Source: Rebecca billardiae RCC1528
Taxonomy: Eukaryota; Protista; Haptophyta
DNA: 64,000 nt
NCBI GenBank assembly: GCA_965240325.2
Contig: OZ251238.1
Coordinates: 1,178,001 to 1,242,000, forward strand
Direction: 5' to 3'
The notes under the pieces were generated by a model. That model saw only the letters and a program-made list of their open reading frames with translations. It searched no databases and was not told where the DNA came from. The position numbers were made by a program, and so were the translations under genes. This document shows, one piece after another, positions 1,048 through 13,192 of the stretch. Each line of letters begins with the position of its first letter. Position 1 is the stretch's first letter.

Positions 1048-3950
1048 ATGACGACGGCTGTGCTCACCGTGGGCAAGGGCAAGCGTTCCTGCGCGAAGCC
1101 TAGGAAGTCCAAGCTGTATCGCAAAGGTGCCTAACGCATCGGGCGCCAGGTCTCTGCCGCATCTGCGCGGCTGCGCATGGCCGCGGCGCTGCCGCACGAG
1201 ATGCTCAAGCTGTCAGCGCGCGCGAGGCGGGGAGCGAGGTGGACCACTCGATCATGCCGAACGAGAACTACCCGGCGGAGGTCAAGCGCAGCGTCAACAG
1301 CCTCGTCGCCATCAAGGCCGAGCGGAAGAAGAACAACCTGCTGCGTGTAGCCAAGCTGCTGCTCTTCAAGTGAGACGCGCTCGGGCTTGCCTGCCTTCAC
1401 TCGCTCGACGACGAGGGCGTCGTGCACTAGGCGCGCGAGAAGGACCGCACACTGCGCATCGTGGGCTCGCGCCAGCCCGAGAGATCTCGACGTGGCTCAA
1501 CCTGGGCATGCGCCACCCGATCCCGCCGCCGGTGGCTGGCTCACGTGAGAGCGCGCTGCGCAATCGCGAGCACGCGGGCGCGGGCGTGATGATGATCGGC
1601 AGCGAGTCGGCGGCGCGGCCGTGGGCGCAGGCCGTGGGCGCCGTGCTGGACCGCTTGGAGCGCTACGGCAAGTCCGCGCGCCCGCGCGGGCAGCCGCATG
1701 TCCTCCTCCTCTCGGCGGACACGGGCCAAACGCAGCGCACTCGCGCTCGGCCACGATCGCCATCGTGCGCAACGATGAGGGTGTTGCGCTCGCGTCGTCG
1801 GAGGCGATCGCCATCTCGGAGCGGCCGGACTCGGACATGCCCGAGCTATGGAGTGCGCACGCCGACGGGATCAATGACGTGCTCCGGAGCGGCCGGCTCC
1901 CACCGCGACCGGCGCCGCCAGCTGCCGCCGCTGCACGTGGCCAGCGCGGCAGGGCGGCGCGGCTGGCGGCGCGGCAGGCGGCGCGGCCGGCGACGCGGCC
2001 GGCGGCGCGGCCGGCGGCAGCGGCGGCAGCGGCAGCGGCAGCGGTAGCGGCGTAGCTGGCGGTGCCGCCGGCGCTGGAGTCCGCGCGGCCGGTGGCGTGG
2101 TCGGCGGCGCGGCCGGCGGCGCGGCGGGCGGCGCGGCTGGCAACGCGGGCGCGTCCGCGGGCACGGGCGGCGGCGCGGCCGGCGCGAGCGGCAGCGGCAG
2201 CGGCGTGGCTGGCGGCACAGTCGGCGCTGGCGTCCGTGCGGCCGGTGGCGCGGCCGGTGGCGCGGCCAGCGGCGCGGCTGACAGCGCGGGCGGTGGCGCG
2301 GCCGGCGGCGGCACTGCCGGCGGCGGCGCGGCCGGCGGCGGCACGGCCGCGCGCGGCCGGCGCGGCCGGCAGCAGCGGCGGCGGCGGCAGCTGCAGCGAC
2401 AGCGGCGTGGCTGGCGGCACAGCCGGCGTTGGCGTCCGCGCGGCCGGTGGCGCGGCCTGCGGCGTGGCCGGCGGCGCGGCTGACAGCGCGGGCGATGGCG
2501 CGCCCGGTGGCGGCGCGCCCGACGGCGGCACGCCCGACAACTGCGCGCCAGGCGGCGGTGCGCCCGGCGACGGGGCCGGACGCGGCCGGCGGCGCGGCTG
2601 GCAACGCGGGCGCGGGTGCTGGCGGCGGCGCGGGCCGCGCGGGCGGCAGCTGCAGTGGCGTGGCTGGCGGCACAGCTGGCGTTGGCGTCCGCGCGGCTGG
2701 AGGCGCGGCCGGAGGTGCTGCCGGCGGCGCGGACAGCGGCGCGGCTGACAGCGCTGGCGATCGCGCGGCCGGCGGCGGCGCGGCCGGCGGTGGCGCGGCC
2801 GGCGGCTGCGCGGCCGGTACGGGCGGCAGCAGCAGCACTGGTGGCAGCAGCAGCGGCAGCTGCGTGGCTGGCGGCACCGCTGGCGCTGGCGTCCGCGCGG
2901 CTGGTGGCGCGGCCGGCGGCGCGGCCGGCGGCGCGGCCGGCGGCGCGGCCGGGGGCGCGGCTGGCAACGCGGGCGCGGGCGCGGGCGGCGGCGTGGGCGG
3001 CGCGGCCGGCAGTGGCAGCGGCGTGGCTGGCGGCACAGCCGGTGCTGGCGTCCGCGCGGCCGGTGGCGCGGCATGTGGCGCGGCCAGCGGCGCGGCTGAC
3101 AGTGCGGGTGGTGGTGCGGCTGGTGGCGGCGCGGCCGGCGGCGGCGCGGCCGGCGGCGGCGCGCAGCAGCGCGGCCTCGGTGGCAGCACTGCCTCGGCAG
3201 GCGGCAGCGCGGCCGGCGGCGGTTTTGGCGGCGGCGCCGAGGCGGCCGACTACGCGGAGGAGCAGAAGGCCATCGTGGCGTACACCGGCGCTTACGTCAG
3301 GCTCGCCAGCCTCGCCGGCCAGGGCTCGCACAACGTCCCACCGCTCCGCTTCAACGTCTGGGCGGTCACGGAGGCGGGCGCAGACGGCGTCTCGCCTCAG
3401 GCGGCGGGGGCGCCTCGTGCAGCTCGCGGACGAGCAGGTGCAGGGGCATTTCGTGCAGGTGACCAAGCGTGCGATGCCGCTCGTGCACGCGCGCAAGTCA
3501 CTCAACTCATTCGTCCGCGAGTACGCCGAGGGGAAGAAGTCGACGGCGGAGCCGCACATCTCGACGGTCGCGCAGCTCGTGCGCCGCGTGTCGCTTGCGA
3601 CGTGGGCAGAGGAGTTCGGCGACAAGGTCAAGGTGCCGCGGCTCTGGCTGAAGAAGTACGCCAAGCGGCAGCGCGAATGGCAGCGCAGGGCGGAGACCGA
3701 CGCGATCGACCTGATCGCGGAGTGCATCACGGCGCGCAAGCTCCTGCGCGAGGAGGCTGGGCTTTCGGAGAAGGAGTTTTCGGCACTCAAGAGGCAAATT
3801 GATGGCGGCGCGCTCGGGCCGCTCGGTGACGGTGATTATTTACGGCGCGGATGTCGCGCGCGACGGCAGCGGGGCTGGGTAGCGGCAATCAGGCAGCTGA
3901 CGGTGCGGGCATGCAGGGGGGACCAGCCGCGCGCGCGCGCCGCCCTCTAG
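1048..3950 (+). pseudogene. Decayed protein-coding cargo of the TIR element (unknown protein with a central Gly/Ala-rich repeat)
   Basis: ATG at 1048. Protein-like, codon-biased segments (NENYPAEVKRSVNSLVAIKAERKKNNLLRVAKLLLFK; EISTWLNLGMRHP; ATIAIVRNDEGVALAS; DYAEEQKAIVAYTGAYVRL; HFVQVTKRAMPL...WLKKYAKRQREWQRR) are broken by in-frame TAA/TGA/TAG and several frameshifts. No DDE transposase motif recognised. Confidence 0.55.
1940..3240. repeat. GC-rich composite tandem repeat inside the TIR element
   Basis: About 6 imperfect copies of blocks such as GGCAGCGGCGTGGCTGGCGGCACAGCCGGCGTTGGCGTCCGCGCGGCCGGTGGCGCGGCC, mixed with GGCGCGGCCGGC units. Confidence 0.85.
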
Positions 3951-4092
3951 GGGCGCGCGCGCAGCGCATAGTAATTTTTCGAAAATTAATCTGGCCGCTG
4001 GACACGCTAACGGCCGCTTTAAAAAAGAAGTCGTTGCTGTGTTTACTGCTTTTACTTATGGCCCGCGGACGCGGTGCAGGGCGGAGCGCGTA

Positions 4093-4611
4093 CAGGCAAT
4101 CGCGGGCAATAAGAAGTCAGAGATCTCACGGCTAGCCTCGGTTTCTTCGCCGTTCGGTAGCCCGAGCGCCTACGGAGTCTCAGTTTCTTAGCTAGGTCCG
4201 CCCGCCGCGCAGGCGCGGGGGGCGCAGGGGGGCAGAGCCCCCCGCTGAGTCTTTAGGCCCGGCCGGCGAGGCCGAAGAAAATTTTGGGCCGCCTTTTTGG
4301 AGTAGCAAATCTGGCATGTTGTTGCATGGATGCTGCGGTGCACTGGCCAGGAGTCAGTCATCAGGAGAAGTCGGGACTTGGCCTGTGTACTCGTAGTCGG
4401 GCCGCGCGCCGCGTCCCCGACGGGCCGACTGGCGACTGCGCCTCGCCCTCGGCGGACCACTCGTCAGCCGGGACGACGTAGTCCCGGTTTCTTAGTGTGA
4501 CTATGCGTATAGCGAACCAGCCAATCGCTAGTCTCAGTTTCTAGGCCAGATCCGCAGATAGCAAGCCCCAGTTTCTTAACGTGACAGCTGCTTATTGCCC
4601 GCGATTGCCTG
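4093..4611. mobile_element. 519-bp MITE, Tc1/mariner-like
   Basis: Perfect 21-bp TIR CAGGCAATCGCGGGCAATAAG (4093-4113 / 4591-4611) with TA on both sides (4091-92, 4612-13). Internal repeats of a (C)(A/G)GTTTCT(T) motif at about 4140, 4180, 4485, 4535 and 4570. No ORF of note. Confidence 0.85.
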
Positions 4612-4732
4612 TAGCGTGGAGCCCCGCCGGGGGCCCTCACTACGTTGTCAAAAAGATCTTTTGATCAAAGAAAAGGGGACGGGGGACGATTTTTATTAGG
4701 GCTGTTGGAGGGTGAGTTTTCGATTGAGGGGT

Positions 4733-4757
4733 CGCACACAGCTCAGGCAGGCGAGAT
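4733..4757 (+). repeat. Dispersed repeat copy A (CGCACACAGCTCAGGCAGGCGAGAT), 60 bp upstream of the TPR-CHAT ATG
   Basis: 25-bp identity with the minus strand at 21723-21747; 22-bp identity with 61240-61261. Confidence 0.8.
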
Positions 4758-4816
4758 CCAACGCTTTTGTGCGACGACGACGTGGGGACGGACGTGGCCG
4801 AGGATCCCGCGCAGCG

Positions 4817-7800
4817 ATGGATGACAGGCAGGGCGAATGCGACCGTGTGGGTGGCCTAGGCCGTCAGTGCCTCAGCCTCGGTCAGTACGAGCGCGCCATC
4901 GAGCACTGCACGCAGGAGCTCGCCATCAGCCGCGAGATCGGCGACCGGGAGTCCGAGGTCCTTGCCCTTTGCACCCTCGGCGACGCGAACGCCTACCTCG
5001 GACAGCACGAGCGCGGCATCGAGCACCTCACGCAAGCGCTCACTATCAGCCGCGAGATCGGCGACCGGCGCGACGAGGTCATGGCCCTCGGCACCCTCGG
5101 CAAGGTGCTTGCCCGCCTCGGGCAACACGAGCGCGGCATCGAGCACCTCACGCAAGCGCTCACCACCAGCCGCGAGATCGGCGACCGGCAAGACGAGTTG
5201 AATGCCCTCGGCACCCTCGGCGAGGTGTACGTCCGCCTCGGGCAGCACGAGCGCAGCATCGAGCACTACACGCAGGCGCTGGCCATCAGCCGCGAGATCG
5301 GCGACCAGCAGGCCGAGGGCCTTGCCCTCGCCACCCTCGGCAACGTGCACATTACCCTCGGGCAGCACGAGGGCACCATCGAGCACTGCACGCAGGCGCT
5401 CGCCATCAGTCGCGAGATCGGCGACCGGCGAGTTGAGGGCCTTGCCCTCTGCGACCTCGGCGGCGCGTACATCAGCATCGGGCAGCACGAGCGCGCCATC
5501 GAGCACTACGCGCAGGCGCTCGCCATCATCAGCCGCGAGATCGGTGACCGGCGGGTTGAGTGCGGTGTCCTCGCCAACCTCGGCGGCGCGTACATCGGCC
5601 TCGCGCGGCACGAGCGCGCCATCGAGCACTGCACGCAGGCGCTCGCCATCAGCCGCGAGATCGGCGACCGGCGAGTTGAGGGCCTTGCCCTCTGCAACCT
5701 CGGCGGCGCGTACTTCGGCCTCGCGCAGCACGAGCGCGTCATCGAGCACTGCACGCAGGCGCTCGCCATCAGCCGCGAGATCGGCGACCGGAAGTCCGAG
5801 GTCCTTGCCCTTTGCACCCTCTGCAGGGCGTACATCAACCTCGGGCAGGACGAGCGCGCCATGGAGCACTGCACGCAGGCGCTCACTATCAGCCTCGAGA
5901 TCGATGACCGGAGAGGTGAGGGCAATGCCATCAGCACCCTCGGCGCCATGCATTGCAGGCTCGGTCAGTACGAGCGCGCCATCGAGCACCACACGCAGGC
6001 GCTCATCATTTTCCGCGAGATCGGCGACCGGCGATCTGAGGGCGGTGCCCTTGGCAGCCTCGGCTTTGTGTATGACAACCTCGGTCAGTACGAGCGCGCC
6101 ATCGAGCACTTCATGCAGGGGCTTGCCATTAGCCGCGAGATCGGCGACCAGCTTCAGGTGTGCAGCCACCTCCTCAACCTTGGTCATGCGAGTGACAGCC
6201 TCGGGCTGCACGAGCGCGCCATCGAGCACCACACGCAGGCGCTCGACGTGTATGACCAACTTTGGCGCCATCTGAGCTCAGACGAGCAGCGCGTGTCGTT
6301 TGGAGATTCCATCCTCCCTGTGCGCGTTGCATCTGAGCTGCAGCTGGTCCTGCTCAAGCTCGGTCGCCATCTCGAGGCGCTTGAGGTTGTGGAGCGCAGC
6401 CGCGCGAGCTCGCTCGAGCTTCTACTTGCACAGCAACACGTGCAGCATGGCGCGCACACCGATTCACCAGCGCACACAGCGACGCCAGTACCGTCGTGGG
6501 AGCAGATGCGCGAGTACGCGGTGGCGCATGGCGCGTGTCTGCTCGTCTACTCGCAGGTGAAGCCCAACCGTGTGCTTGTTTGGGCGGTGATGCCGGACGC
6601 GACGCGTGAGCCGCTCTTCTGTGACCATGAACTCAGCGAGACATCGCTCGCCACACTTGTCGAGGAGACTCGACAGGCGCTTGGGCTCGAGCGGCGGCTC
6701 GCGCGCGCTCCTCTCCGCGCGCCAGCCACCACGTCCATGCGCGAGGTGCACGTCGACTTTGACGTGCACGACCTGCCGATTGCTGCCGATGGCGATACCT
6801 ATGGCTGCCTTTCCTCCGACGAAAACAGTGACGGCTCGTTGGACGACAGCGCGCTGTCGACTGCCCCTTGCACGCGCAGCTCGATGTGCAATCACCGCCG
6901 CCGCCGCGGCTCCACGTGTGCAGGCGCTCGAGGGGCGACGCAGCGCACCAAGCGCAGCCGGGAGGAGCAGGAGGCAGAGGCAGAGACCACCGCTCGCAGG
7001 CTGCTCCACCGCTGCTACGCGCTGCTCATCGAGCCAATGGCGGACGCGCTCCACGGATGCACCAAGCTGATCGTGCTGCCAGACCACCAGCTGCACGCGC
7101 TGCCATTCGCCGCACTGCTCGACAGCGAGAACGGCGAGGGTCGCCACCTGATCGAGCGGCACGCGCTGAGCATTGCCCCCTCGGTAGGGTCGCTGCTGCA
7201 GCTCGACGCGCGCCCAGTGCTGCCACTGCCAGCAGAGCTCGGCGGCGCAGTGCCAGCGCTCATCGTGGGCGTGAGCGACTACTCGGCATGCGTTGTGCCA
7301 TCGAAGCTCCTGCACGAGGAGGATCTGGCGAACGCGCAAGAGGATGCGTGTCGCGAGCACCCGAGGTGGTGCCGCTGGCTGGAGGTGCAGGCGCACGAGG
7401 GCAGCCGGCGGGTCGGACTCGACGAGGTGAGCCCAGCCGAGCGCAGGGCCATCGCCAAGCTGCTGGCGGTGGGTGACGTGGTGGGCGAGCAGCTTTGCCA
7501 TCTCGATGGTGCCAAAGCTGAAGCGGTGAGTACTGCGATGATCCTCGTGTCCACCAGGGTTATCAGCCCCGAATATCTGCTCGACTCGCAGGCGACGCGG
7601 ATGGAAGTCATGCGCCAGGCAGTCGGCGCGCGCGTGCTGCACATTGCGAGCCACGGCTCGCCGACAGGCCTTCACCTGGGCGACACAGCAGCCGCCACCG
7701 CCGCCGACCGGGAGCTGACTCTAGCTCATGTGGAGACGCTCGACCTGGGAGCTGCGGAGCTCGCTGTGCTCAGCGGATGCGACACGTTCCAGGGCGACAC

Positions 7801-8092
7801 GAGCACGGACGGGCTGATCGGCATCGCACGCACCTTCCTCTCCAGGGGCTGCCGCGCTCTTGTGGCCTCGCTGTGGGGGGTCAACGACGCCGAAACGCCC
7901 AAGTTGATGGACGCCTTTTACAGGCACCTCACACGCAGCTCGTCGCCGCAGCTTGCCATAGGCGACCCTGCTGAGGCGCTGCGTGCGGCGATGTGCGAGA
8001 GGCTTGAGCGCCACCGCGGCAAGATGCGCCGTGTGCGATTGTGGGCGCCGTTCGTCGTCTTCGGCGCGCCCGCCATACAGCCGCTGCACTGA
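4817..8092 (+). CDS. TPR-repeat + CHAT-domain (caspase-hemoglobinase fold) protease, TTC28-like architecture, 1091 aa, intronless
   Basis: Twelve 40-aa TPR units (LGQHERAIEHxTQALAISREIGDR), then CHAT motifs LIVLPDHQLHALPFAAL, VLHIASHG (His codon 7652), LAVLSGCDT (Cys codon 7778), VASLWGVND and WAPFVVFG. First ATG at 4817. Confidence 0.93.
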   Translation: MDDRQGECDRVGGLGRQCLSLGQYERAIEHCTQELAISREIGDRESEVLALCTLGDANAYLGQHERGIEHLTQALTISREIGDRRDEVMALGTLGKVLARLGQHERGIEHLTQALTTSREIGDRQDELNALGTLGEVYVRLGQHERSIEHYTQALAISREIGDQQAEGLALATLGNVHITLGQHEGTIEHCTQALAISREIGDRRVEGLALCDLGGAYISIGQHERAIEHYAQALAIISREIGDRRVECGVLANLGGAYIGLARHERAIEHCTQALAISREIGDRRVEGLALCNLGGAYFGLAQHERVIEHCTQALAISREIGDRKSEVLALCTLCRAYINLGQDERAMEHCTQALTISLEIDDRRGEGNAISTLGAMHCRLGQYERAIEHHTQALIIFREIGDRRSEGGALGSLGFVYDNLGQYERAIEHFMQGLAISREIGDQLQVCSHLLNLGHASDSLGLHERAIEHHTQALDVYDQLWRHLSSDEQRVSFGDSILPVRVASELQLVLLKLGRHLEALEVVERSRASSLELLLAQQHVQHGAHTDSPAHTATPVPSWEQMREYAVAHGACLLVYSQVKPNRVLVWAVMPDATREPLFCDHELSETSLATLVEETRQALGLERRLARAPLRAPATTSMREVHVDFDVHDLPIAADGDTYGCLSSDENSDGSLDDSALSTAPCTRSSMCNHRRRRGSTCAGARGATQRTKRSREEQEAEAETTARRLLHRCYALLIEPMADALHGCTKLIVLPDHQLHALPFAALLDSENGEGRHLIERHALSIAPSVGSLLQLDARPVLPLPAELGGAVPALIVGVSDYSACVVPSKLLHEEDLANAQEDACREHPRWCRWLEVQAHEGSRRVGLDEVSPAERRAIAKLLAVGDVVGEQLCHLDGAKAEAVSTAMILVSTRVISPEYLLDSQATRMEVMRQAVGARVLHIASHGSPTGLHLGDTAAATAADRELTLAHVETLDLGAAELAVLSGCDTFQGDTSTDGLIGIARTFLSRGCRALVASLWGVNDAETPKLMDAFYRHLTRSSSPQLAIGDPAEALRAAMCERLERHRGKMRRVRLWAPFVVFGAPAIQPLH
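4860..6270 (+). repeat. 120-bp coding tandem repeat (TPR array), 12 units
   Basis: The anchor CGCGAGATCGGCGACC (a few copies with substitutions) recurs at 4931, 5051, 5171, 5291, 5411, 5534 (3-bp insertion), 5654, 5774, 5894, 6014 and 6134. Confidence 0.95.
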
Positions 8093-8256: not shown

Positions 8257-8564
8257 CTAGGCCGCCGCCGCCGGCTCGTGGTTCGCGGCGGCGTCGGCGG
8301 CCTCCCACGCCTCGAAGAGCTCCTCGACCCTCGCGTTCGCCTCGTCCAGCTCCGCCTGCAGCGTCGCCGCGGCCTCGTAGTCCGCGCCCGACTCCGCGAG
8401 CGCCGCCTCGAGCGCCGCGGCCGCGTCGGTCGCGCGCTCGAGCTCGCGCTCGAGTCGGCGCGCCTCCTTCTCCGCGGCGGCGCGCGCCTTGCGCGCGGCC
8501 TTGTCGGGGCGTGGCGCGGGCGCGGCCGAGCCGGGCGCGCGTGCGGCGCTGCCCGCCGCGAGGC

Positions 8565-8595
<31 letters not shown>

Positions 8596-9677
8596 CACGT
8601 CCGCGTCGGTGAGCGGGCGCTCCTCGGCGCGCACGGCGCCGCGCGCCACGTGCACGACGACCGTCGGCCGCAGTCGCCTCAGGAACGGGGTGTCGTGGGA
8701 GACGGCGACGATGGCGCCTTCGTACGCGTCGAGCGCGTCGAGCAGCACGTCGACCATCCCCACGTCCAGGTGGTTCGTCGGCTCGTCGAGCAGCAGCACG
8801 TTGTGGCTGCTCACCGCGAGCGTCGCCAGCGCAACTCTCGCCTTCTCGCCGCCAGACAGCTCGGCGACGCGCCGCCCGGCGGCGCGCGAACCGCTGAGGC
8901 CGAGCGCGCCGAGCGCGGCGTAGCCCTCCTCGTCGGAGGTGTGCACGTCGCGCTCGCGCGCGGCGGCCATCACGAGCTGCAGCGGGCTCGCCTCGCCGTC
9001 CAGGTCCTGCGCCAGATCCTGCGTGAACGTGCCCACCGCCACACCCGCGCCCACGCGCCGCGCGCCCGCCGCCAGGCCGAGCCTGCCGCCGAGCGCGGCC
9101 AGCACGGTCGATTTGCCCGCGCCGTTTGGCCCGACGATGGCGACGCGCTGGCCGCGGGTGACGGCGAGGTCGACGCGCTCGAGCAGCGGCGGGCGGCCGC
9201 GCGCGCACTCCCAGCCGAACGCCGCGCCCTCCAGCGCGAGCTGCTCCGCGGCGCTCGGCGGCGCGCGCCGCAGGACGAGCGAGCGCGCGCGCGCGCCGCC
9301 GCCGCCGGCGGGCGCGTCTGGCGGCGGCGCGGCGGGCGCGGAGGCGAGGAGGCGCGCGATCGCCTTCTTCTTCGACTCGGCGGCGGCCGCCTTGGTCGCC
9401 GTCGCGCCGAAGCGGTCGACGAACGCCTGCAGCCGCGCCACCTCCGCCGCCACCCGCTCGGCCTCCGCCGCGGCGCGCGCGGCGCGCGCCGCCCGCTCCT
9501 GCCGCCACTGCTCGGGCGTAACGGATTTGTAACTGTCAAGCCGGCCGTTGTGGAGCTCGGCGATGGAGTCGGTGGCGCGGCGGAGGAGGTCCTCGTCGTG
9601 CGAGACGAGGACGAGCGTGCCTGCGAACCCCTGCCCCACGCCCTGCCCACCACCACCGCCCCCACCGCCGCCGCCCC

Positions 9678-9708
<31 letters not shown>

Positions 9709-10533
9709 CAGGTAGCCTGCCAGCCACGCCTTAGCGGCCGCGTCCAGGTGGTTGGACGGTTCGTCGAGCAGCAGCAGGTCCGGCGCGGAGAGGAGGAGGC
9801 GGGCGAGGCCGATGCGCATGCGCCACCCGCCGGAGAAGTCCGCGCACCGCCGCCCCTCGTCCGCCGCGGAGAACCCCAGCCCGCGCAGCACCGCCGCCAC
9901 CGTTACTTCCGCCGTGTAACCGCCAGCCGCGTCGAACGCGCGCTCGGCGGCGGCGAGGCCGTCCGCTGCGCGCGCGGAGGTGTCGCCGCCGGCGACGGCG
10001 GCCTGCGCGGCGTCGAGCGCGGCGCGCGCGGCCTGGAGCGACTCCATCCGGCTCATCACCTCCTCCTTCACCGTCGCCGTCGAGCCCGTCACCGCCGTCT
10101 GCTCGAGGTAGCCGACGCGCAGCGACGGCGAGATTGCAATCTTGCCGCCGCGCACGGCGACCGTGTCCGCGTCGGCGGCGAACTGGGGCTCGTTGCGGAG
10201 GAGGGCGCGGAGCAGGGTGGACTTGCCGCAGCCGTTCACGCCGACCAGCCCCCACCGCTCGCCCACGCCCACGCGCCAGCTCGCGCCCTCGAGGAGATCG
10301 GAATCTCCCACCGAGACGGACGCGTCGTCCAATAGGACGGCGGCGCCGGCCGTCGGGTCGGCGGCGGAGGAGGCGCGCGGGCGCGCGCGGGCGAGCGCGC
10401 TCACGCCGAGGCGCGCGCGCCCGGCGGCGCACGGCGGCGCGCCCGCCGACGCCGCGCACGCCGCGCACGCGCCGAGCGCGACGAGGGCGACGGCGGCCTT
10501 GGCCTGATGACACGTCGTCGCGCCCATCACCAT
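8257..10533 (-). CDS. ABC-F subfamily ATPase (translation factor-like), probably plastid-targeted, ~758 aa
   Basis: Two NBDs: GVNGCGKS / FSGGW / LLLLDEPSNHLD and GPNGAGKS / LSGGEK / LLLDEPTNHLD. Helical linker, C-terminal coiled coil, no TM domain. The N-terminus has a hydrophobic stretch ending ASAGAP followed by an Arg/Ala/Ser-rich peptide. Start could be 10533 or 10527. Confidence 0.92.
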
Positions 10534-10904
10534 GCTGGCGTGCTGTCGCAGTGTCGCGTCGACCACGATGGGGTGGATGCCCGTTGGTCGAACGCGCAAT
10601 AGCGGCAAAAAAGAAATGCGATCGCAGTCTCGTCCGGTGTCTCGGACGGAATCTCGCGCCCGCGCACAGTTTTGTGCGGCCGCACGACGACCGGGGCGGC
10701 CCGGGCAAAGCGGCGCTGCCCCAAAGCAGCTTACCCGGGTGCCCTGCTGCCCAGCCGACGGTGAGGCAAGAAGCTGCTGAACCTGTGGTGCGCTGTGCTG
10801 CACGCTTAGAGCCGAGCAAGCTCTCGGCCCGTGGGCGTCGGCCGCGCCGAGGCGTGCGGGGTGGGCCTGCCCGCCGAGGCGCGCGCGAGGGCCGCGACCA
10901 CCCC

Positions 10905-13192
10905 ATGCCCCACCTCGCCCCCGAGGCCGCGCCCGTCGGCGACGCGGCGTGGCCCGCGCGGCGCGCGCACGGCGGGGGCAACGAGAGCCCGCCCGCGCGC
11001 GCCGGGCTGCTGTGCTGCTTCCCCGCGCCGGGCGCGAGCAGCGTGCGCCGCGCGTCGGTGCACGAGCGCGACGAGCCCGCGCGGCGCACGAGCGAGGCCG
11101 CCTCCGACGCCGGCCGCCCCGCCGAGCCCGCGGACTGGTGGGATGCGCTTGAGCTCAGACGGCGGGAGCCCGCAGAGGCGTGGGCGTCGTTCCGCGCGAT
11201 GGAGGTGGTGGGCATGCCGAACGTGGGGAACACGTGCTTCATGAACGTGGCGCTGCAGTGCCTCCTCGCCACCTCGCCGCTCACCACCCACTTCCTCTCG
11301 GGCGCGTGGCGCGACGAGCTGAACCGCTCAAACCCGCTCGGCACCGGAGGCGAGCTGGCGGACGCGTACACTCGGCTGATCGCGACGCTGTGGCCGGGCG
11401 CGCTGGGGATCCGCGCGAGCTCCCCGGCGGGGTCGGAGGCGGCCGCCGCCGCGCCCGCCGTGCTCAGACGGCGCACCACGCGCGACGCCGTCCTCTGGTT
11501 CAAGCGGAGGCTCGAGCGGCACCACGCGCAGTTCCGAGGCGCGCGCCAGCACGACGCGCAGGAGCTGGCATCCACGCTGCTCGACGCGCTGCACGAGGAC
11601 CTGAACCGGTGCACGGAGAAGCCGTACATCGAGGACGTGGAGTGCCTCGACGGCGAGGTGCGCGCCGCGCAGCCGCCGCGCGCCCGAGGCACACCGCGCG
11701 CGCGCCGCCGCGCGCGCGCGCGGCTCCGGCTGACGCGCGCGCTCGGCGCGCGCCCCCCGCGCCGCGCCGCGCGCCCCCGCCGCTTCGCTCGCCGCGGCGC
11801 AGCGCGAGGAGGAGATCGCCGCGGAGGCGTGGGGGAACTACCTCCAGCGCAACCGCTCGATCATCGTCGACCTCTTCCAGGGCCAGCTGCGCTCCACCGT
11901 CACCTGCGACTCGTGCCGGCGCTCGTCGACGCGCTTCGACCCGTGCATGTGGTTGTCAGTTCCGCTGCCCGCGCGCGAGCCGGAGCCTGGGTGCGCGGGC
12001 TGTCTGCCGGGGTCGGGCCGGCGGGAGGAGGGCGAGGGGCTCGAGCTGGCGGAGTGCATGCAGGCGTTCTGCGCCGAGGAGACGCTCTCCGAGGACAACC
12101 ACTGGTGCTGCCCGCACTGCAAGCAGATGCGGTGCGCAGCCGCGCGCAGCCGCGCGCAGCCGCGCGCAGCCGCGCGCAGCCGCGCGGCCGCGCGCCACCG
12201 CGGACACTGGGGGGGGGGGAAGCGCGCGCGCGCGCACGGCTGCTACACGGCTGCGCCGCTCACGCGCGCGCGCGCGCGCCCGGCCGCGCGCGCCCGGCCG
12301 CAGCGGCGCGTCCAAGCGCCTCTCGCTGTACAAGCTGCCCCCCGTCCTCATGATCCACCTCAAGCGGTACAACACGCGCGCACACGGCCGTCACGCCTCC
12401 AAGCGCAACGACCCGGTCCGATTTCCGCTCGAGCGCGCTGACTTCTCCGGACTGGTGGGGGGCCCGGCGGCGCGGACGCCGTCGGTCGCGACGGCGGTGG
12501 GCACGCCGACGACGTACTCGCTGTACGCCGTCGTGCGCCACAGCGGCTCCCTGTACCACGGCCACTACACCGCGACCGTCGCGCGTAACGGCTTTTGGTA
12601 CGAGTGTAACGACGAACGCGTGCGGCCCGTGTCTCGCGAGCACGTGGCCTCGGCCGAGGCGGCGCGCACGGCGTACCTGCTCTTCTACATGCGCGACACG
12701 GCGGCGCTCGCGGGCGCCGCCGCGCCGCCCGCCGGCGACGCGCCCGCCTCGAGCCGCGAGCCGCCGCGCCCCGCGCCGCCCGTCGACGCCGTGATGCGGG
12801 TGCCGCGCCAGTCGCTGTCCGCGCCGCAGCACTGGCCGTTCCCGCTCGAGCTCGTGCCGAGCCGTTTCCTGGAAAGTTCCGGCGGGAAGAAGGGCGGAAG
12901 GGGCAGCAGCATGGGGCGCGGCCGCGCGTCGTCCGCGGGCAGCGAGCGCGAGGGCAGGCGGCGCGCCGGCGCCGACGACCTCCGCCGCTCCACCGGCGGT
13001 GGCGGTGCCAGCTCGGTCGTCGCGTCGGACGTGACTCACCCGACCTCCGTGGAGCTGCAGGCGATGGGCGGCGGCGCGGCGCGCGGGCTGCGCGGCGGCG
13101 GGACGGGGACGAGCTCGCCGGCGACGCACAGCGCCAAGGCGATGCGTGGCGGCGGCGGCGGCTCGGCCGGCGGCGGCGCGCGGCGCACGTGA
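10905..13192 (+). CDS. Ubiquitin-specific protease (C19, USP4/8/15-like); exons 10905-11657, 11803-12131, 12304-13192 (~656 aa; start uncertain)
   Basis: Cys box GMPNVGNTCFMNVALQCL, QHDAQE, SIIVDLFQGQLRSTVTC, WCCPHCK, LMIHLKRY, His box YAVVRHSGSLYHGHYTA, WYECND. Removing GT-AG introns 11658-11802 and 12132-12303 (with CTGAC/CTCAC branch-like sites) restores the frame. Confidence 0.92.

Follow-up and report, generated by a model that had tools for sequence, protein, structure and literature searches.

A TPR-CHAT gene of the haptophyte Rebecca billardiae looks like a fast-diversifying sensor-protease

Gene structure and domain architecture

We analyzed a 64,000-nucleotide stretch of the genome of the haptophyte alga Rebecca billardiae RCC1528 (assembly GCA_965240325.2, contig OZ251238.1, positions 1,178,001 to 1,242,000 of the forward strand; hereafter, the window), in which a plus-strand gene at 4817-8092 encodes an array of tetratricopeptide repeats (TPRs) joined to a CHAT protease domain. 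A preliminary description had read this gene as an intronless sensor-protease, diversified by the shuffling of its repeats. The underlying open reading frame (ORF) runs from 4712 to 8092 and its first ATG, at 4817, gives a complete gene of 1091 codons plus a TGA stop, as judged from the ORF list, Pfam matches to TPR_12 and CHAT, and collinearity with paralogues elsewhere in the genome and with P0001, the closest relative found outside it. Since this single ORF is collinear with all of these, no intron is required, as had been claimed. Among NCBIfam models, the protein matched TPR-containing families alone, all far under their cut-offs.

The N-terminal part (4826-6268, plus strand; amino acids 4-484) consists of twelve 40-residue TPR units in tandem, of the LGN/Pins type, as established from the tandem repeat analysis, a unit table, an identity matrix and matches in the PDB. 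Tandem Repeats Finder reported a period of 120 bp over 4872-6245 (11.4 copies, 80% matches), and twelve units were resolved, starting at residues 4, 44 and so on up to 445. Pfam TPR_12 (E 6e-66) and several further TPR models match amino acids 4-484, and the PDB sequence matches of this part are GPSM2/LGN and Pins chains (E 1e-39 to 4e-44), which places it among the LGN/Pins-type TPR_12 arrays. A single-codon (Ile) insertion in unit 5 (5525-5527, plus strand) is the sole break of the 40-residue phase among the ~138 units of the seven arrays of this kind that we compared in the genome. Two further ORFs, of 471 codons (4856-6271, minus strand) and 357 codons (5202-6275, plus strand, in another frame), overlap the array; they result from the tandem repetition of a 120-bp unit without stop codons, and are no evidence of genes.

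The array is followed by a capping helix and a helical/beta linker (6269-6997, plus strand; amino acids 485-727), delimited in an AlphaFold2 model, within which lies an acidic-then-basic loop of low confidence (6689-6943, plus strand; amino acids 625-709; predicted local distance difference test (pLDDT) values below 50 at model residues 146-230). The remainder (6998-8065, plus strand; amino acids 728-1083) is the CHAT caspase-like protease domain (Pfam PF12770, clan CD, E 2e-46), matched with 159 bits against a cut-off of 24 and over profile positions 2-288 of 289. We aligned 20 CHAT sequences, namely the window gene, seven paralogues, P0001 and eleven bacterial TPR-CHATs, and found 20 invariant columns, including His942, His946-Gly947 and Cys988, all of which are kept in the window gene. 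The codons of the catalytic residues His946, in a His-Gly motif (7652-7654, plus strand), and Cys988 (7778-7780, plus strand) were checked; the His-Cys dyad, which had been called intact, is indeed so, both residues being invariant across all 20 sequences, the bacterial ones included.

An AlphaFold2 model of amino acids 480-1091 (mean pLDDT 76.7, predicted template modeling score 0.80) was compared with the PDB using Foldseek. The first match was Csx29, the TPR-CHAT protein of Craspase (E 2e-10, TM 0.41-0.46), and the subsequent ones were separase, gingipain R, DdvA and SAVED-CHAT, with E values of 1e-4 to 2e-10 for these matches; by this model, the protease half is predicted to have the caspase-haemoglobinase fold. 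By sequence, amino acids 477-1091 matched none of the PDB chains at E values up to 10. An identity as a NOD-like receptor (NLR) or another STAND receptor was considered and ruled out: neither Pfam nor NCBIfam gave a NACHT or NB-ARC match over the whole protein, whose TPR array begins as early as residue 4, and without an NTPase domain it cannot be classed as an NLR.

A family of paralogues with arrays of different length

For the genome search, 72 Mb in 41 contigs were covered. With the protease half as query, ten further matches were found, eight of them 45-48% identical and all of them in long open frames, and the Pfam CHAT model gave 15 matches at ~13 loci; the paralogues are spread over at least six contigs. 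Counting the window gene, at least nine genes of the TPR-CHAT type are present. We compared ten paralogue loci (L012-L021), six of which carry the same 40-residue scaffold in perfect phase, with the window gene as the seventh. These seven arrays comprise 36 units in L012, 29 in L013, 26 in L016, 17 in L015, 12 in the window gene, 10 in L014 and 8 in L017, and the TPRs of L018-L021 are degenerate. Higher-order repeats of two or three units are found in several arrays, including the pair L012/L013. The two members of this pair lie ~57 kb apart on opposite strands of contig C10, and their protease halves are 95% identical, with unit counts that differ by seven; near-identity combined with 36 versus 29 units is therefore direct evidence of a recent change in repeat number. 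In other words, a count of paralogues and of their repeats shows that the gene is not single-copy and that its unit number is not fixed.

The loop that precedes the CHAT domain has a common layout in the window gene and L012-L019: an acidic stretch, then a conserved run of Lys/Arg, then an acidic helix. The basic stretch could be a nuclear-localization signal or an autoprocessing site.

Outside this genome, a word search with amino acids 480-1091 found P0001 as the closest sequence (E 2e-48, 34% identity), together with 67 further matches, all weak and mostly to bacterial TPR-CHAT proteins. P0001 comes from a 31-kb metagenome contig in ENA (57-69% GC) and combines a CHAT domain with nine units that share the scaffold and with an N-terminus weakly resembling ubiquitin. 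Its 90% cluster holds versions of 1150 and 910 residues that are exactly six units apart (9 versus 3), a difference that could be a real polymorphism or an assembly collapse. A scan of metagenomes for an orthologue of the protease half found none, with one match at 31%; when viral contigs were scanned with the CHAT alignment, two weak matches were obtained. In a maximum-likelihood tree of the protease half, which covers the algal genes, P0001 and bacterial sequences and includes no animal sequence, the algal genes and P0001 form a clade of their own (support 100/100), separate from the bacterial sequences. Within the family of this genome, the window gene branches off first, the other seven being united with 94/95 support.

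Two observations concern the ends of this nearest outside relative. Its ubiquitin-like N-terminus ends in Arg-Gly-Gly (L022, 8001-10985 on an ENA metagenome contig; P0070; P0077), and some of its gene calls have a C-terminal extension of 170 residues to which no family is assigned.

Homogenization of the repeat units

Within the window array, the two halves of the unit behave differently. Among units 1-10, DNA identity is 0.70 over codons 1-18 (helix A) and 0.87 over codons 19-40 (helix B and loop), and protein identity is 0.48 for the helix-A half and 0.77 for the helix-B half, or 0.64 overall. One half had been described as nearly invariant even in DNA; the contrast between the halves is real, but the wording was somewhat overstated. 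The eight variable strings quoted in that description are all found in the array. Pooled Nei-Gojobori estimates give a synonymous divergence (dS) that is alike in both halves (0.24 in helix A, 0.22 in helix B), and a non-synonymous divergence (dN) of 0.45 versus 0.125. The conserved residues hold column-specific codons, such as GCC for the Ala at position 7 and GCG for the Ala at position 31. Codon bias alone therefore does not account for the DNA identity, which reflects shared descent or homogenization. In the identity matrix, divergence is greatest in the end units U0 and U11; U5-U7 have DNA identities of 88-92%, and the non-adjacent units U1 and U8 are 83% alike over their first 54 nt. Some scaffold residues are also replaced in the array, including Gly12 by Cys in unit 8.

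Besides the contrast between the end units and U5-U7, two lines of evidence bore out the claim that the repeats are homogenized. Ten of the 12 window units group as a pure clade (support 0.989) when all units of the family are placed in one tree, and at the Leu columns 8, 11 and 32 nearly every window unit uses CTC, as opposed to CTG in nearly every paralogue unit. Having a clade of their own as well as private synonymous codons, the units must have been homogenized, or the array expanded, within the gene; the private CTC codons either spread through the array or came from one founder unit.

Units may also move between genes. Between the window gene and L012, L013 or L015, the proportion of synonymous differences (pS) is 0.18-0.21 in the helix-B half of the repeats, and 0.56-0.57 in the protease halves, where the proportion of non-synonymous differences (pN) is 0.36-0.38. 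At shared 4- or 6-fold degenerate residues, codon identity between genes reaches 0.65-0.68 in the repeats, compared with 0.46-0.47 for the protease half. These values, to which ~16 columns contribute, are suggestive of an exchange of repeat units between paralogues.

Variation and selection on the predicted ligand face

To relate the variable positions to known TPR structures, we used the Pfam TPR_1, TPR_2 and TPR_8 alignments, in all of which profile position 3 falls on unit position 7; unit positions therefore equal canonical TPR positions plus four. Magliery and Regan (PMC1261162) found canonical positions 2, 5, 9, 12, 13, 33 and 34, located on the concave face, to be the most variable, and positions 2, 5, 6, 9, 12 and 13 to touch the ligand in HOP (PMC1261162). 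Unit positions 6, 9, 13, 16 and 17 correspond to canonical positions 2, 5, 9, 12 and 13, and each of them ranks within the top eight of the 40 positions by variability (hypergeometric probability 8.5e-5). As their spacing follows a periodicity of 3-4 residues, they should lie on one face of helix A. By this numbering, variation is concentrated on a helix-A stripe that matches the predicted concave ligand face. The variable register differs within the family: the paralogues are hypervariable at positions 6 and 7, and the window gene, which has Ala at position 7, varies at 5, 6, 9 and 10.

We then counted changes site by site, using a FastTree tree of the units, Sankoff parsimony reconstruction of codons, and the five sites chosen a priori from the canonical numbering. 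In the window gene, these sites have undergone 37.8 non-synonymous (N) and 2.2 synonymous (S) changes, a ratio of ~4.7 (one-sided binomial P 0.005 against neutrality), and the remaining 35 sites have 61.0 N and 23.0 S changes, a ratio of ~0.86. For the 119 unique units of the seven arrays, the counts are 225.5 N and 33.5 S at the five sites (ratio 1.73, P 8e-4), and 433.8 N and 223.2 S at the other 35 (ratio 0.63). By this measure, which counts on a small tree and is not recombination-aware, the ligand-face positions are under diversifying selection. A ratio of 4.3 for the eight most variable sites was also calculated and was discarded as circular. The unit alignment with site-wise dN/dS that had been proposed as a check thus returned a ratio well above 1, not below it, at the five sites. 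Overall, the gene is not single-copy with a fixed number of repeats, dN/dS at its variable sites is not below 1, and its variable residues do not fall outside the concave groove as located by canonical numbering.

An array without a protease served as control. L023 (3394-7119 on contig C14) encodes a protein of 1241 residues that lacks a CHAT domain and has a low-complexity tail; its 27 units keep the 40-residue scaffold of the window gene in phase. At the DNA level these units have 65% identity and, sharing the Ala at position 7 with the window gene, are most variable at positions 6, 17, 21-23 and 28-30, mainly in helix B. It is therefore not a default property of this scaffold to vary on the helix-A face alone.

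Genomic surroundings

Downstream and convergent to the TPR-CHAT gene lies a gene for an ABC-F ATPase (8257-10803, minus strand), followed by a ubiquitin C-terminal hydrolase (UCH) domain (10134-13192, plus strand). The latter is divided over two overlapping frames, with its N-terminal half at 10134-12353 and its C-terminal half at 11180-13192, and so contains an intron or a frameshift. Pfam searches of the larger ORFs identified a RING-like ORF and an EamA transporter beyond it. The GC content at third codon positions (GC3) is 0.83 in the TPR-CHAT gene and 0.915 in the ABC-F gene, which agrees with the earlier remark that the gene is less GC3-extreme than its neighbors; its total GC is also lower than theirs. 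Among the large paralogues GC3 is 0.89-0.91, and the whole family spans 0.81-0.95.

Upstream, at 4091-4613 and ~200 bp from the ATG, is a 523-bp miniature inverted-repeat transposable element (MITE) with 26-nt terminal inverted repeats that are 96% complementary, flanked by TA. Candidate copies in the genome number at least 356, the scored full-length ones being 94-96% identical, which suggests a young family of the Tc1/mariner type. Two fragments of dispersed repeats flank it: one at 3951-4049 (98 candidate copies; scored copies span 91-99 nt at 94-100% identity), and one at 4616-4732 (787 candidate copies; scored copies span 110-117 nt at 93-97% identity), which ends ~85 bp before the ATG. 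With these three elements filling 3951-4732, the promoter region is repeat-derived up to ~85 bp from the ATG. The gene had been said to sit beside a transposon cluster, and this holds for the three dispersed-repeat pieces, one of them a MITE; a transposase ORF was not found among the larger neighbors, as no Pfam match to a transposase, reverse transcriptase or integrase was obtained in the larger ORFs within ~15 kb. Inverted repeats bracketing the TPR-CHAT gene were searched for and none were found, the sole good pair being the one that delimits the upstream MITE. Copies of the fragment at 4616-4732 also adjoin the paralogue locus L020 and a MITE copy on contig C1. Farther upstream, 1871-3950 is a low-complexity region of 79% GC, with long Ala/Gly/Arg/Pro-rich frames on both strands and no Pfam match; most of these frames are probably non-coding.

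A candidate ligand-sensing protease and its alternatives

On balance, and with modest confidence, we favor the view that the gene is functional and encodes a ligand-sensing cysteine protease: a TPR groove is joined to a CHAT domain, the array is diversified at its ligand face, and the gene belongs to a lineage-specific family. In such a protein, the twelve LGN-type units would form a solenoid whose concave groove, lined by the A helices, binds a protein or peptide ligand, and a helical linker would connect the solenoid to the caspase-like CHAT domain of clan CD with its His-Cys dyad. Engagement of the TPRs would trigger cleavage of a substrate by the CHAT domain, a mode of action known from other CHAT proteases controlled by repeats. 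Through unequal crossing-over or gene conversion, the scaffold, mostly helix B, would stay uniform, and the ligand-face residues would be kept different. What the groove binds appears to change quickly, as the pattern of variation suggests, and a lineage-specific family with arrays of 8-36 units points to a repertoire of binding specificities. By analogy with related proteases, we infer ligand-controlled proteolysis, and a role in defence, non-self recognition or cell death may be envisaged. The idea of a sensor-protease diversified by repeat shuffling thus stands as far as architecture, dyad, homogenization, ligand-face variation, non-synonymous excess and paralogue family are concerned.

Several points weigh against this interpretation. 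The assignment to the concave face was derived from canonical TPR numbering and from helical periodicity and not from coordinates. Comparing repeat units by dN/dS is a non-standard test, in which the units recombine and the tree is built on 120 bp, and strong GC3 codon bias depresses synonymous change; moreover, the ratio at the remaining 35 sites is also compatible with some relaxed constraint. The same could be meant by the only phase-breaking insertion of the family, the lower GC3 and the transposon-filled promoter region. The protein has no NTPase switch, and PADLOC has no model that matches the protease half, the TPR part alone being matched. As had been pointed out at the outset, no substrate gene is evident nearby, the neighbors being ABC-F, UCH, RING-like and EamA genes. 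Finally, the window units, at 64% identity in protein (77% in the helix-B half), stay below the 85% that marks highly conserved repeats in fungal NLRs; L012, L013 and L015 reach 79-83%.

A housekeeping or regulatory function is the alternative that survives best, although we consider it unlikely: the gene would encode a TPR-CHAT protein with a fixed partner, like TTC28/TPRBK (an animal protein of cytokinesis), HetF (a cyanobacterial protein of division and differentiation) or separase, and the variation in repeat number and in helix A would be a neutral by-product of unstable tandem DNA. The TPR-then-CHAT architecture is the same as that of TTC28 (PMC12314368), and separase is also among the Foldseek matches, but a conserved single copy is not what the genome contains, with its ~13 CHAT loci and seven arrays of 8-36 units. 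Even P0001 retains the scaffold to a high degree; yet that best outside match of the protease half is 34% identical, and the metagenome scan was without an orthologue. Concave-face positions are the most variable ones in TPRs generally (PMC1261162), but the control array L023, built on the same scaffold, drifts on helix B instead, and non-synonymous change at the ligand-face sites of the window gene exceeds the neutral expectation.

It is less probable still that the gene is a decaying or relaxed paralogue drifting to loss of function, with a high dN/dS that reflects relaxed constraint and not diversifying selection. The dN/dS of ~0.86 at the 35 sites away from the ligand face would fit with this, but relaxation alone predicts a ratio near 1, not one of ~4.7 restricted to five sites on one helix face. 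Similarly, the array carries the only phase-breaking single-codon insertion of the family and scaffold replacements such as Gly12 to Cys in unit 8, but helix B remains 87% identical in DNA, the 1091-codon frame is open and all 20 invariant CHAT columns are kept, dyad included. A GC3 of 0.83 versus 0.89-0.91 in the large paralogues and the transposon fragments up to ~85 bp from the ATG would also be in line with decay; the protease half, with pN of 0.36-0.38 and pS of 0.50-0.57, nevertheless resembles other pairs of the family. That the gene was recently acquired from bacteria is highly improbable. Such an origin would account for its lower GC3 and its lack of introns, and would agree with GC3 and GC below those of the neighbors and with the mostly bacterial database matches of the protease half. 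However, those matches are only 24-30% identical, the algal genes group with P0001 in a 100/100 clade outside the bacterial sequences, paralogues occur on at least six contigs, and the GC3 of the window gene is within the family range of 0.81-0.95.

Going beyond a single ligand-sensing protease, we would only tentatively entertain the possibility that a unicellular alga has in this family a repertoire for innate recognition, made up of contracted receptor-caspases: the TPR groove, as it diversifies, would sense proteins of viruses or other non-self proteins and turn on CHAT directly, which would start cell death. Specificities would then be generated by exchange of units within genes and between paralogues on different chromosomes; between-gene exchange is hinted at because scaffold codons are more alike between genes than are those of the protease halves. 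In marine phytoplankton, caspase-like activity and virus-triggered cell death have long been studied, and we know of no receptors that have been placed upstream of either. A small, tractable family of intronless TPR-CHAT genes would provide concrete receptor candidates, and the algal arrays show evolutionary marks of recognition receptors, namely a homogenized scaffold, a variable ligand face and 8-36 units.

Comparison with known systems

In a full-text literature search, we found no paper describing CHAT-domain proteins in eukaryotic algae. Among bacterial systems, the best structural match is Csx29 of the type III-E CRISPR system (Craspase), whose CHAT protease, too, comes with TPRs, by which it is regulated. 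The two differ in that sequence identity is only ~10%, with no match to the PDB at the sequence level, and in that Csx29 acts bound to Cas7-11 and guide RNA, which have no eukaryotic counterpart, and has few TPRs that are not homogenized. No Cas7-11 or CRISPR genes were seen among the neighbors checked, although no search was aimed at Cas7-11 or a CRISPR array. The gasdermin-controlling CHAT proteases of fungi and bacteria share with the algal protein a caspase-related CHAT domain joined to repeats that form a superstructure, which in those systems serve as the sensor (PMC10197012). In those systems a gasdermin gene lies within ~10 kb (PMC10197012), whereas none was found near the algal gene; a genome-wide Pfam search for gasdermins also gave no match, but control genomes were equally silent.

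The TPR, ANK and WD repeats of fungal NLRs are near-identical, differ in number, and evolve in concert within paralogues and possibly between them (Dyrka et al. 2014, PMC4986451). Positively selected sites lie on the concave face of their TPRs, and high internal conservation is there defined as more than 85% protein identity over at least 100 residues (PMC4986451). Differences in repeat number, concerted evolution and variable sites assigned to the concave face are likewise found in the alga; the algal protein differs in having no NACHT or NB-ARC domain and in having its effector fused directly to the repeats. The candidate NB-ARC-TPR receptors of Ectocarpus are an algal precedent for shuffled tandem TPR modules, of 42 residues, with some positive selection (PMC3341825). 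There, one repeat is one exon, diversity arises by exon shuffling and signaling involves NB-ARC (PMC3341825), as opposed to a single-exon array with a predicted protease output here.

The closest likeness in architecture is with animal proteins. An N-terminal TPR_12-type array followed by one CHAT domain is common to the algal protein, the coral TPR-CHAT proteins and animal TTC28/TPRBK (PMC12314368); by its TPR array and C-terminal CHAT, the algal protein resembles TTC28/TPRBK, this likeness being one of architecture. Corals and the alga also share a lineage-specific expansion and a TPR length that varies strongly among copies, and the authors of the coral study also propose that diverse TPRs provide diverse ligand sites (PMC12314368). 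Their copies number 276-304 in tandem clusters, compared with ~13 algal loci on several contigs (PMC12314368). Unit-level homogenization, private synonymous codons and a site-wise excess of non-synonymous change, as described here, do not appear in the available part of the coral paper (PMC12314368). As the same design has already been described in corals, fungi and bacteria, what the algal family adds is supporting detail and not a new principle: a family tree, private synonymous codons, a control array on the same scaffold, and a ligand-face register that is shifted relative to the paralogues.

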